A DNA stretch of 63,205 bases, counting the filler, from Olpidium bornovanus S191 (lineage: Eukaryota; Fungi; Olpidiomycota), in assembly GCA_017911155.1 (NCBI GenBank). It is 32 parts of 32 records of this genome, joined end to end, with 100 filler letters (N's around TTAATTAATTAA, not from the genome) between each part and the next. Parts side by side here need not be neighbours in the genome. Positions count along the whole stretch, not along the records: positions 29,524 to 32,629 come from JAEFCI010000853.1; 31 more parts are not named here. The stretch is one strand, 5' to 3'. The notes under the pieces were generated by a model, which saw only the letters and a list, made by a program, of their open reading frames with translations, was not told the DNA's origin and made no database searches. Below are positions 29,524 through 33,177 of the stretch, one piece after another (position 1 is the stretch's first letter; each line of letters begins with the position of its first letter). Made by a program: the position numbers and the translations under genes.

Positions 29524-32382
29524 CACGCCCTCGATTGTGGGCTCGTTGAAAAGCGTCGCGACCCCGATTTCCACGCCGTAATGCGCCTGCAGCTGGGCTA
29601 TCACTTGCACCGCCGAGAGCGAATCCAGCGCGTACGTCTCCATGACGTTGGCCGTCACGTCCGGCTCACCTTCGGGGACGACCCCGGGGCGGGCGACGCC
29701 GCGCAAGAATTCCGCGACGCAGGCCTGAATGTCCTTCTGGCCGGGAATGCGCGCGGCCGGGAGGTGTCCGGCCGGTCGGATCGTCGTCGTCGTCGCCGTC
29801 GTCGTCGTCGCCGTCGCCGTCGCCGCCGAGCGGCCGACGAGCTTGCGGCTTTCAGCCTCCGCCGCCGCCTTTTCGACCTCCTGTTTGCGGCCCGCCCCCT
29901 GGTCGTCGTACAGGACGGCGGCGCCGAACTCGCCGCCGCCGAGCATCGCGGCGGCTTTCGACCTCTGGACCTTGCCGCTCGTGGTTTTCGGGAGGGCCCT
30001 GGCCGCCAAGAAAACTAGTCTCTCCGGCAAGATGCCGTGGGTTGCGGCGACTGCGCACGCAACCTCTTCCCTGATGGCGCCGTAGTGTTCGGGTCTCGCC
30101 GACGCCCGCAGCTCGCACAGCAGCGTGAGCTTCTCGGCGGGCTCCTCCGCCGCGGAGCCGGAGCAGCCGCCGGCGTTCGCGGGAGCGGCTATGACGCATC
30201 CCGGCCGGATGTGCGGGCTGGCCTCCTGGGCGGTTATCTCGATGTCGTGCGGGTAGTGGTTCTTGCCGTTGATGATTATCAGATCCTTTTGCTGTTTGCG
30301 GCGTAGAGTGGGCGGTTTTTGTGTGGGGCGGGGAAAGAGGGGGAGTGGGGGGGGCCACGAGAGTTGGCAGGGGTCGTGGGGGGTGGGTGGGGGGGTGGGG
30401 TACGAGGGTTGGGGGGGCGCGACGCGTCAAATTAAAACGCGTTTTCCCTATTTCCTCCCCGGGTTGGTGGGGGAAACAAAAAACAAACAAACAACCCCCA
30501 CGCATTCCGCAAATTTTGTTTTTCTCCGGCGAATTTCGGAGCGAGAGGGAGAGGGCGGGGCGTTACGAAAGGATACCCCGGACTCACCCGTCCCGCGATG
30601 TACACCTCTCCGTCGTAGTAAAAGCCGAGATCGCCGGTCCTCAGGAACGTTGTCCTCTCCGGCTCCTTCGCGGTCCAGAAGCAGCCGTCCTGGCCGGTGC
30701 CGGCCAGTGTGGCGCGGAAGGTGCTCTCGTTCTCCTCGTCCCGGGCCCAGTACCCACTGCCGACGCTGGGGCTGGACAGCCAGATTTCCCCGACCGTGAG
30801 GTGCGGCCGGAGGTTCCTCGTCTCGGGGTCGACTATGCGGACCTCGACGTTCTGCTCGGCGTTGGGGTACCCGGTGCCGAGGATCAGGCCCTTGGGGTCG
30901 GGCCCGGCGAGCTCCGGGCCCGTCACGCTCTCCTCGGGGTACGGCGCCAGCCTCCTGACCACCCTCACCCGGCCGCCGCGCCGGAGCTCCGCCTCGTCCA
31001 CGAGAACGCAGCTCGGGAACCCGCGGTGCCGCGTGGTGAAGCCGAACCCGAACGCGCACGTCTCCGCGAGCCCGTACAGGTTCCGGAACGCCCCCGGGTC
31101 GAACCCGGCCCCCGCCGTGAGCCGGCAGAACCGCTCGATGGTCGCCCGCCGGACGGGCTCGGCCCCCGCGAACGCCCCCTCCAGGTGCGAGAGGTCCAGC
31201 CCGGCCAGGTCCGACGGCCGCAGCCTCCGCCCGCAGAGCTCGTACGCGAAGTTCGGCGCGGCCGTGTACGTCGCCTTGTACCGTGACATCTTCGCGGTCG
31301 GGCAGTGAGGGCGCGAACGAAAAAAAAAAGAAGAAAAAAAAAAAAAAAAAAAAGGAAAGCCGGATTGCCGGTTTCGAGTCAGGCCGCCCGCTGACACCCC
31401 GTCTTTTTTCTTAAAAAGAAACGCGTTTTTTGTTTCGCAGCAACCCCCCCCCCCCTCCCCCTCCCCCGGCTTTCTTACCGCCTGCAACCATACGATCGGC
31501 TTTTGAAGGAACGTCAAGGGGCTGAACACCGCGGCGCTCGCGTTCGCGCGGATGACGTTCAGGAACCCGCCGACGAGGCCCAGGTCGTGGAACTGCGGCA
31601 CCCAGAACACGATTGTTTTGTCGGGAGGGAGGTCGCATTCCGCGTTCAGCGCCGCCACGTTCTTGAGAAGCTGGCCGTGGCCGAGCGCGACGCCCTGCGA
31701 ATTTTAGAAAAAGGGGGAGGACACGAGGCGTGTCAGGCGCTTTTTTTTTTTTTTTTTTTCGTTTTTTTTTTTTTTTTAACGAAACGAGCCCCCCCCCCCC
31801 CAAAAAAAATTCCTCGCCCCGCCCCCCACCCCCCCCCCCTCCCCCCTCTCCCCGTTTCCTGCTCGCCTTGGGGTCGCCCGTGCTGCCGCTGGAATACTGG
31901 ATGAACGCGAGGTCGTCCGGGTCGATGTCGCGGCCGCAGCCCTCCGGGGCCGCGGGACTGCCGTTGCCGACGACGGACTCGCAGGCGACCCACCGCAGGT
32001 TTTCCGGCCACCCGACGCTCCCGCCGCCGGTCAGCCTGGCCGCGGCGCCCCTGAGCGTCGTCGCCACGACGTAGTCGCGCTCGCACAGGACGACCCGGGC
32101 CCCGGTGTCCGCGGCGATCCGCGCGAACCGCCGCACGTCCCGCGCCAGCGTCCGCGGGTCCGGCGGCGCCAGCGGCACCGCGACGCAGCCCGCCGCCAGC
32201 ACCCCGAACATCGCCGGCAGGAACGAGATGCCCGGCCCGAAGCACAGCAGCACGCGCTCCCCCGCCCGCGACCCGGCGACCTCGCGGAGGTAGCGCGCCA
32301 CGCGCCGCGCCCGCACGTCCATCTCGCCGTACGTCAGCTTCGACACCTCTTTCAAGTTGCCGTTCAACCAGGTAAAAGCGAC
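29524..32382 (-). CDS. Fatty acyl-AMP ligase (FAAL) fused to an acyl carrier/PP-binding domain, truncated by contig ends. Exons 31867-32382, 31479-31694, 30588-31289, 29524-30291
   Basis: YSSGSTGDPK/GV, WVPQFHDLGLVGG, APNFAYELC, AEPV, YGLAET, GEIWLSSPSVGSGYW, LRTGDLGF, GR/QKDLIIINGKNHYPHDIE, PKTTSGKVQR, then ALDSLSAVQVIAQLQAHYGVEI...LFNEPTI (carrier Ser codon 29620-29622). Confidence 0.9.
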
Positions 32383-32556
32383 CTTTTTATTTTGTTTTGT
32401 TTTGTTTTGTTTTGCCCCGGCGCCCGGGAAAAATGAGAAAAAAGGGAGGAAAACAAAAAAAAAATCGAAAAAAATAAAGCGAAAAACGGGAGGTTAGAGA
32501 AAGGATAAGAAAAAAAAACAAACAAAAACTAAAACGCGACAACCCCCCCCCCCCCC

Positions 32557-32616
<60 letters not shown>

Positions 32617-33177
32617 CCCCCCCCGCGCGNNNNNNNNNNNNNNNNNNNNNNNNNNNNNNNNNNNNNNNNNNNNTTAATTAATTAANNNNNNNNNNNNNNN
32701 NNNNNNNNNNNNNNNNNNNNNNNNNNNNNCATGCCGGTGGAGCCCCTGATCCTGCAGGAGACAGAGGCTTACGTGTACTCCTCGGCCCTCCGGAGTGGGG
32801 TACCCTGTAGTTTACCCTTGATACTGATACTCTTGCAGTGGTCGTTATAAAAAAGGAGCCGCAAAGTTCGGTGGGGGTAGGCAGCAGATGCAAAACTATT
32901 ATGCCACCAGTTCTACTGCTCTTTTGCACAGATCGCGAATGGCATAATTGCCGACGCCCGCCATTTTCTTGGCCAATCTAACCGGGCGCAGTCCATCTGC
33001 ACTTCCCTCCTGCGTTTCTGCAATGGGTTGGGGGCGGTGTTTGTTCCGTCCGCCTCGATTATCCTTCGCGAGCTGTGGGAGAATTTTACTCGCTCGGAGG
33101 GAAGACGGCGGGGGAAAAAGGGGAGACTTCGCGCTCGCCAAACCCCCCCGCCCCCCCCCCCTCGCCGTTTCCAACCA

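Follow-up and report, generated by a model that had tools for sequence, protein, structure and literature searches.

What enzyme is encoded where a fungal nuclear contig carries an adenylation domain of bacterial type followed by a carrier domain, and how much of it lies beyond the contig? The question is raised by positions 29524-32629 of the window analysed here, a stretch of 63,205 nucleotides (filler included) in which 32 parts of the genome of Olpidium bornovanus S191 (assembly GCA_017911155.1) are joined end to end. This piece comes from record JAEFCI010000853.1, and its GenBank model is KAG5463290.1, a partial protein from the O. bornovanus metagenome-assembled genome (MAG). A sequence-only reading of 29524-32382 had proposed a fatty acyl-AMP ligase (FAAL) paired with an acyl carrier protein (ACP), acting as the N-terminal starter of an undescribed lipid or secondary-metabolite assembly line. 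We consider it probable that the piece is instead the central part (FAAL and first ACP) of an expressed, intron-containing nuclear gene of O. bornovanus, orthologous to an enzyme of ~1,630 aa in Glomeromycotina in which a flavoprotein domain resembling PAI, the fatty-acid double-bond isomerase of P. acnes, is followed by FAAL, ACP, ACP and thioesterase (TE), the cassette being of bacterial origin.

Identity of the adenylation and carrier domains

The piece is very GC-rich, and its long sense open reading frame (ORF) fragments lie on the minus strand. Joining four exons on this strand (Table 1) yields a single open frame of 734 codons, with a G+C content at third codon positions (GC3) of 0.92, which is unclosed at the piece edge at 29524. 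All FAAL motifs quoted in the sequence-only reading, together with the insertion, were recovered in this product, in agreement with the Pfam, NCBIfam and PDB matches: YSSGSTGDPKGV at residues 163-174 (the P-loop, divided by intron 1), WVPQFHDLGLVGG at 203-215, APNFAYELC at 255-263, YGLAET at 316-321, GEIWLSSPSV at 411-420, AGRQKDLII at 476-484, NHYPHDIE at 489-496, PKTTSGKVQR at 579-588 and LDSLSAVQ at 700-707. The core motifs of the ANL family (P-loop SSGSTGxPKG, YGLAE, TGD, GRxKD and PKTxSGK) are all present, the TGD motif being located at 460-467. Pfam assigned AMP-binding to exons 1-3 (E 3.5e-25 for exon A), and AMP-dom_DIP2-like (residues 3-115 of exon D) and PP-binding to exon 4; exon D also matched FadD32/FAAL models at 1e-20.

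If the protein were an ordinary long-chain acyl-CoA synthetase, dependent on CoA, with a carrier domain attached, this would explain why GenBank names the Gigaspora ortholog "putative fatty acid CoA ligase" and why NCBIfam model PRK07768, named long-chain-fatty-acid--CoA ligase, scores well (97 bits, aligned to exon C over its full length). However, this score lies below those of the FAAL models, which ranged from 122 to 128 bits (PRK05850, 128 bits, 2.8e-37; FadD32, 125 bits, 2.1e-36; PRK12476), while genuine long-chain acyl-CoA ligase models reached at most 33 bits and aligned only from residue ~146, after the insertion. FAAL models align unbroken over exon C residues 2-234, and the Pfam AMP-binding match there takes up 180 residues for 132 positions of the profile. 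The strong PDB sequence matches are all FAALs (Legionella, cyanobacterial, FadD32, FadD28, FadD23 and E. coli; 1e-27 to 1e-21 for exon C), and exon B matched FAAL structures only, with FAAL models as its best NCBIfam hits. The exon B segments FWVPQFHDLGL and SPLTFLQKP align to the same segments of the Legionella, cyanobacterial and FadD28 FAALs, SPLTFLQKP being a conserved form of the FAAL-specific helix segment as defined in PMC8460268; the correspondence of exon B to EcFAAL W224, P226, M231 and T252-R258 was derived solely by alignment-range offset. The elements by which FAALs reject CoA have been described as this helix, a conserved Pro in the W-x-P motif and bulky residues of the pocket (PMC8460268). 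Since the insertion and the SP-x-x-FLQ-x-P helix region are both of FAAL type, and a fused ACP is the acceptor of a FAAL, the acyl-CoA synthetase appears highly improbable, and the profile comparison that the sequence-only reading had called for favours the FAAL.

Behind the adenylation domain, the Thr/Ala linker and the carrier domain with intact LDSL serine follow in frame, as had been noted from the sequence. The carrier matched Pfam PP-binding (6.1e-09, profile positions 14-62 of 67) and aligns to the first ACP (ACP1) of the Rhizophagus irregularis ortholog P0295, in which the serine likewise stands in a DSL motif. By motif, profile and PDB sequence matches, the piece is a FAAL-type adenylation domain with an in-cis ACP. 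FAALs adenylate a fatty acid and pass the acyl group to the phosphopantetheine thiol of an ACP rather than to CoA (PMC8460268, PMC11837247), and the same transfer without CoA is predicted for the Olpidium FAAL-ACP.

A spliced transcript that extends beyond the contig

Evidence for expression came from Logan contigs of RNA runs, aligned to the piece. Eight runs from two studies, all with one organism label, held 64-72% of the sampled words, approximately the exonic share. The RNA contigs skip exactly three segments of the piece, corresponding to introns 1-3, and the transcript is therefore a eukaryotic spliced mRNA and not bacterial contamination, a candidate explanation that was rejected on these grounds. 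The claim that a bacterial-type FAAL resides in a fungal nuclear gene is thereby borne out. Base composition differs between the two compartments, with 65-74% GC in exons versus 51-60% in introns, which are rich in homopolymer runs. In contigs of runs X1 and X2, from which all three introns are removed, the joint of intron 1 connects 31693 with 31866, with 3 nt of ambiguity and the boundaries GCGAGC...CGCAG, and the GC-AG intron at 31695-31866 is the sole splice-like reading of the skipped 172-nt segment.

At the 5' side, the first visible exon starts at 32382, directly behind an AG acceptor. Contigs from runs X1-X4 match the piece as far as 32385 and then continue into unrelated exon sequence, the last 3 nt being ambiguous between exon and intron. 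This upstream exon encodes ...MHRAAMRYPQK, of which 11 residues were read, in frame with the FAAL, so that the start proposed at 32382 proved to be a true exon start. On the 5' side, the contigs reach 1491-1601 nt beyond the first exon visible in the piece, and 3' of the piece edge they run on for up to 1571 nt; the mRNA therefore measures at least about 5.3 kb. Because all Logan RNA contigs break at the (ACG)n repeat (29776-29833), no single one spans both FAAL and ACP. Two runs searched as raw reads (X21 and X24) gave no usable coverage of the piece, the only matching reads being poly-G/C; X21 reads touching the intronic G-runs had loose ends of poly-G or poly-C.

Orthology to Glomeromycotina proteins

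The spliced FAAL shares 45-46% identity over 592 aa (about 500-529 bits) with proteins of Rhizophagus, Gigaspora, Acaulospora and other Glomeromycotina, versus 38-40% (about 370 bits) with the best bacterial matches. An exhaustive HMMER search with exon C returned the Olpidium protein itself, followed mostly by bacterial multidomain FAALs and by a 1,626-aa Dentiscutata/Gigaspora protein, and when the annotated protein was used in a word-indexed search, the top match was a FAAL-ACP-TE protein of Glomus cerebriforme (433 bits) and the second a Rhizophagus-type fragment. These two large protein searches returned no member from fungal groups other than Glomeromycotina and Olpidium. In maximum-likelihood trees that included 11-13 Glomeromycotina sequences, Olpidium was placed as sister to all of them, with an SH-aLRT of 100 in a quick tree of 151 taxa and UFBoot/SH-aLRT values of 100/99 in a careful tree of 60 taxa. 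Its branch is long (0.64) and lies outside the whole Glomeromycotina crown, within which the order of branches is in rough agreement with taxonomy. The grouping is not explicable by composition, since the Olpidium gene is extremely GC-rich and the mycorrhizal genes are AT-rich.

Gene structure and collinearity agree with the trees. A single BLASTP alignment joins Olpidium residues 4-726 to residues 485-1158 of P0295 (41% identity), collinear throughout and including ACP1, with exon A entering at residue 485. Intron 3, between GR and QKD in phase 0, occupies the same position and phase in the R. irregularis ortholog (junction between ...ITGR and QKDVII, locus L008), while the other introns are lineage-specific (one of three shared). 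By our own estimate, made from three Olpidium introns and one Rhizophagus intron in ~1,770 aligned nt and ignoring splice-site preferences, such a coincidence would arise by chance in roughly a few cases in a thousand. The upstream exon peptide MHRAAMRYPQK-VAFTW matches LAAKRYPDK-VAFTW of P0295 (AA-RYP-K-VAFTW). Finally, P0295 predicts ~1,428 nt of coding sequence 5' and ~1431 nt 3' of the visible part, compared with 1,491-1,601 and at least 1,571 nt in the contigs; these flanks exceed the predicted coding sequence, which leaves room for short untranslated regions. Orthology of the Olpidium gene to the Glomeromycotina family is well supported. Because collinearity, upstream peptide, flank lengths and shared intron point the same way, a PAI-like FAD domain, a second ACP (ACP2) and a TE are held to be probable in the Olpidium gene as well.

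The same evidence bears on the possibility that the contig was mis-binned and belongs to another GC-rich eukaryote in the zoospore preparation. The MAG was binned by oligonucleotide composition from a mixed, non-axenic sample (PMC7865070), the contig is only 3.1 kb long, and some stretches of it are also found in runs from soil and root metagenomes and under other organism labels. Against this stand the eight RNA runs of two studies under one organism label, whose word content equals the exonic share, and the finding that the only close relatives are fungal, with a position as sister to Glomeromycotina, where Olpidium is expected, and an intron in common with Rhizophagus. We regard mis-binning as quite unlikely.

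The presence of the gene in both fungi may reflect either vertical descent with several losses or an ancient fungus-to-fungus transfer, and the data fit either route. In the latter case, Olpidium or its ancestor would have received the gene from an early arbuscular mycorrhizal fungus (AMF) within plant roots, or the reverse. The patchy distribution among fungi in the protein searches is compatible with such a transfer, both lineages are obligate inhabitants of living root cells, and the shared intron would be equally expected. However, Olpidium branches outside and not within the Glomeromycotina crown, on its long branch, only one of three introns is shared and codon usage is fully adapted, so that any transfer must have been ancient. 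Such a transfer seems to us possible but rather doubtful, and it concerns the history of the gene, not its identity. Whichever route applies, the long branch of Olpidium outside the crown of the mycorrhizal fungi makes it an old event.

Architecture of the family

Family members from mycorrhizal fungi measure ~1,610-1,670 aa; in order from the N-terminus, Pfam assigns to them a FAD domain, the FAAL, a pair of PP-binding domains and a thioesterase. The genera in which they were detected are Gigaspora, Dentiscutata, Cetraspora, Acaulospora, Diversispora, Rhizophagus, Funneliformis, Ambispora, Entrophospora and Glomus. In the Gigaspora protein, the 450 residues at the N-terminus match PDB entry 2b9w over their full length (E 1e-37). 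This entry has been identified as PAI (PMC13003489), and the FAD domain is called PAI-like here because of this end-to-end match. The thioesterase is of the type found in polyketide synthases (PKS), nonribosomal peptide synthetases (NRPS) and fatty acid synthases (type I). The nearest examples, previously listed as "FAAL-containing NRPS-like", are Gigaspora margarita KAF0481106.1 and R. irregularis EXX53363.1 / XP_025172458.1. The Olpidium gene resembles them in the order FAAL-linker-ACP1, in the intron at GR-QKD, mapped in R. irregularis, and in transcript flanks of the length expected for the same outer domains. Olpidium differs from Rhizophagus in having two extra introns within the FAAL and a fourth just upstream, whereas the remaining two introns of Rhizophagus are situated in the region of the flavoprotein, outside the Olpidium contig; the composition is opposite, with a GC3 of 0.92 in Olpidium and AT-rich genes in AMF.

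This architecture, together with the transcript, decides against the N-terminal placement that the sequence-only reading had given to the FAAL-ACP. Its expectation of a larger enzyme did hold, with transcripts extending on both sides, but the PKS, NRPS or reductase continuation that it envisaged is unlikely, as the orthologs carry ACP2 and a thioesterase behind the visible part and a PAI-like domain of ~450 aa in front. A loading module of a PKS, NRPS or hybrid line, with extension modules downstream of the contig end, would agree with the frame being open at the piece edge and with the many bacterial relatives organised as FAAL-ACP-KS..., FAAL-ACP-C... or FAAL-ACP-AONS. However, ~1.5 kb of transcript with an exon in frame precedes the FAAL, which is therefore not N-terminal, the ~1.57 kb of transcript downstream, seen in what may be an incomplete contig, cannot accommodate a KS-AT or C-A module together with a release domain, and the whole of the strongly supported sister clade ends in ACP-TE, KS and C domains being absent from all of its members. 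The loading module is accordingly very unlikely.

Bacterial relatives and origin of the cassette

The fungal clade is nested in a strongly supported FAAL group (100/99) whose members are often fused to the same kind of FAD domain. Three fusion orders were observed in this group: FAAL-ACP-FAD, FAAL-FAD-ACP-acyltransferase and P450-like-FAD-FAAL-ACP-TE. Since several fusion orders fall in one FAAL superclade with the fungal genes, the partnership between FAAL and flavoprotein appears to be recurrent. The first two orders were seen in the pairs P0304/P0305 and P0306/P0322 (FAAL-FAD-ACP-acyltransferase, PlsC-type, and FAAL-ACP-FAD), in which the FAD domain has the amine-oxidase fold.

The third order is that of the bacterial protein P0302, encoded in a dense bacterial locus on a 1.37-Mb metagenome scaffold. 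Between its FAD domain and the N-terminus of the Gigaspora protein, identity is 35% (E 8e-83), and a relative with 63% identity to P0302 is present in a MAG of Pseudomonadota (L009). P0302 resembles the fungal genes in carrying flavoprotein, FAAL, ACP and TE in the same order, but it differs in lacking introns, in its operon-like bacterial context, in an extra N-terminal P450-like region, in having one ACP instead of two, and in its FAAL, which is ~36% identical to that of Olpidium. At this locus (L006:6897-15046), an SDR gene, the P450-like-FAD-FAAL-ACP-TE gene and a second, stand-alone PAI-like FAD gene are found together, flanked by AraC-type regulators; judged by gene content, it looks like a small fatty-acid-modifying operon.

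The next relatives being bacterial genes in which the domains have the same order, the simplest history suggested is a single transfer, long ago, of the complete flavoprotein-FAAL-ACP-TE cassette from bacteria to a fungal ancestor. Intron gain would have followed, together with duplication of the ACP in the mycorrhizal proteins. The horizontal origin with later intronisation that had been surmised from the DNA fits both the trees and the existence of bacterial genes of the same architecture.

Proposed activity and points against it

In the proposed mechanism, the FAAL domain would adenylate a long-chain fatty acid and move the acyl group directly, without CoA, to the phosphopantetheine arm of its own ACP. 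The PAI-like flavoprotein would remodel the chain by isomerisation, desaturation or oxidation, either on the free acid before activation, as PAI does, or, alternatively, on the ACP-bound chain, as the JamABC desaturase does. The type-I thioesterase at the C-terminus would then release the product by hydrolysis or transfer it to an acceptor. A continuation by PKS or NRPS modules is unlikely.

Several points weigh against the proposal that the piece belongs to a bacterial-derived flavoprotein-FAAL-ACP-ACP-TE gene of O. bornovanus acting in this manner. The flavoprotein, second ACP and thioesterase of Olpidium would fall outside the 3.1-kb contig and are unseen. A protein search with the Gigaspora N-terminal domain returned no fragment of an Olpidium flavoprotein, and a scan of JGI metagenomes with the annotated protein returned only relatives at ~32% identity and no contig bearing the Olpidium flanks. 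The species assignment of the contig is less than certain, because the MAG was binned from non-axenic zoospores. The P0302 FAAL is the nearest non-fungal branch with moderate support only (94/61). Substrate, flavoprotein chemistry and thioesterase acceptor are, for the whole family, predictions from sequence. Finally, in the Gigaspora protein P0159 (residues ~90-95), the position aligned to PAI residue 88 is a Cys. In PAI this residue is a carboxylate-binding Arg; if that role holds, the fungal flavoprotein may not bind free fatty acids as PAI does and need not be an isomerase of such acids.

AMF are unable to synthesise long-chain fatty acids themselves and depend on plant lipids. Olpidium is an obligate, parasitic root endobiont that belongs to a zoosporic lineage placed as sister to all non-flagellated fungi. 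Against this background it may be speculated, although we hold it to be unlikely in this full form, that the cassette was gained before the split of Olpidium and Glomeromycotina, or exchanged very early, and kept only in these root-cell lineages, where it would take up free fatty acids of the host, without CoA, and convert them into a double-bond-remodelled (conjugated or oxidised) lipid serving the plant-fungus interaction or the handling of host lipids.

Relation to known systems and significance

Characterised bacterial FAALs and FAAL-ACP didomains include FadD32, FadD28, the Legionella and E. coli FAALs, HapA, NocH, AmbG, the olefin synthase loading didomain and JamA/JamB/JamC. The Olpidium domain shares with them the fold family, by profile and PDB matches, and presumably the formation of acyl-AMP followed by transfer to a carrier (PMC8460268, PMC11837247), and JamABC provides a precedent for modifying a fatty acyl chain on an ACP (PMC11837247). 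Identity to the bacterial FAALs is ~35-40%, however, and these feed PKS/NRPS modules, whereas the Olpidium gene is eukaryotic, contains introns, and has relatives that end in a thioesterase without an extension module.

DIP2 (CPS1) is likewise a source of FAAL-like adenylation domains in fungi, and the C-terminal subdomain of the Olpidium FAAL matches a Pfam model named after DIP2. DIP2 proteins consist of a DMAP1-binding domain and two tandem FAAL-like domains, without ACP (PMC8460268, PMC9342972). Membership of this family was ruled out: Olpidium has a single FAAL with the carrier directly behind it in cis and groups with bacterial-type FAALs, and its nearest relatives have a single FAAL and no DMAP1 domain, which upholds the distinction from DIP2 made at the outset. 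In plants, uncharacterised fusions of HemY, FAAL and catalase or amino-acid oxidase have been reported (PMC8460268). In these, too, a eukaryotic protein independent of PKS/NRPS has a flavin domain of the amine-oxidase fold on the N-terminal side of a bacterial-type FAAL, but they end in catalase or oxidase and not in ACP-TE; the likeness is drawn from the published domain order.

FAAL surveys list FAALs in some fungi (PMC12820801). In two genome-mining papers, Koczyk et al. reported FAAL-containing "NRPS-like" clusters, bacterial-like and unique to Glomeromycotina among the surveyed Mucoromycota, without giving an explanation (PMC8070225), and Venice et al. described the Gigaspora gene as starting with an "acyl-CoA ligase" (PMC7732545). 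The first domain is named an acyl-CoA ligase in both, and term searches of the two papers found no mention of a PAI-like domain. Our literature search found no paper that deals with the function or the PAI-like domain of the family, with an Olpidium ortholog or with the intron in common. The gene is no isolated case, as its family is present in all AMF genera sampled and has been noted in silico (PMC8070225; PMC7732545), but never characterised. Orthology to a fungal enzyme of characterised function, by which the sequence-only reading would have been overturned, does not apply, since the orthologs are themselves uncharacterised. What appears to be new is the member from Olpidium, the intron shared with Rhizophagus and the assignment of the flavoprotein as PAI-like, while the family was already known, by genome mining only.

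An expressed Olpidium ortholog with a shared intron implies that the gene is old and not a recent acquisition of mycorrhizal fungi, and its retention is tied to two independent life styles within root cells, both those of obligate root biotrophs. For expression and assay, the Olpidium member also adds a second sequence of very different composition, and the PAI-like domain provides the family with its first concrete, testable chemical hypothesis. The main value of the finding is evolutionary and ecological; the enzyme class is known, and the function is deduced.

Features of the piece and additional observations

Table 1. Coordinates of the gene features on the piece 29524-32629, counted along the window.
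Feature	Position	Strand	Description
Upstream intron, 3' part	32383..32629	-	Cut by piece edge; acceptor AG 32384-32383
Exon A	31867..32382	-	FAAL N-terminal subdomain, VAFTW... to ...YSSGSTGDPK (first half of A3/P-loop motif)
Intron 1	31695..31866	-	172 nt, GC-AG, phase 0; splits P-loop motif
Exon B	31479..31694	-	GVALGH...FWVPQFHDLGL...SPLTFLQKPIVWLQA; covers FAAL-specific helix region
Intron 2	31290..31478	-	189 nt, GT-AG, phase 0; joint 31289 to 31479 in X1 and X2 contigs
Exon C	30588..31289	-	APNFAYELC, YGLAET, FAAL-specific insertion region, GEIWLSSPSV, LRTGDLGF, ...YIAGR
FAAL-specific insertion segment (approximate)	30855..31049	-	Exon C residues ~81-145, FGFTTRH...VLVDEAELRRGGRVRVV...GTGYPNAE
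Intron 3	30292..30587	-	296 nt, GT-AG, phase 0; between ...AGR and QKDLII...; joint 30291 to 30588
Exon D, first part (whole exon 30291-29524)	29941..30291	-	FAAL C-terminal subdomain, QKDLIIINGKNHYPHDIE ... LPKTTSGKVQR
Inter-domain linker	29677..29940	-	Thr/Ala run from imperfect (ACG)n repeat at 29776-29833
Carrier (ACP/PP-binding) domain	29524..29676	-	Cut by piece edge; LDSL Ser codon 29620-29622

The GenBank model KAG5463290.1 mis-splices intron 1 and reads ...FIQGEGGGGVALGH..., by which the P-loop YSSGSTGDPK is lost; the RNA-backed GC-AG intron restores the motif. The upstream intron sequence is of low complexity, with poly-T, CAAAA repeats and a G run of ~90 nt. The latter, at the end of the piece (32540-32629 on the minus strand; C on the plus strand), may be either a sequencing or assembly artefact or a genuine low-complexity part of the intron. 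ORFs of 100-320 aa on the plus strand were set aside as antisense artefacts of the high GC content.

Short parts of the stretch (5-18% of words) were also detected elsewhere, namely in one soil metagenome, two root metatranscriptomes and runs carrying three other organism labels; they possibly represent related Olpidium species or conserved segments. In run X2, C>T differences were observed at 29971 and 29989 (read as G>A in the gene); one falls in a Lys and one in a Pro codon, and the two, being synonymous, probably represent strain polymorphism under purifying selection.

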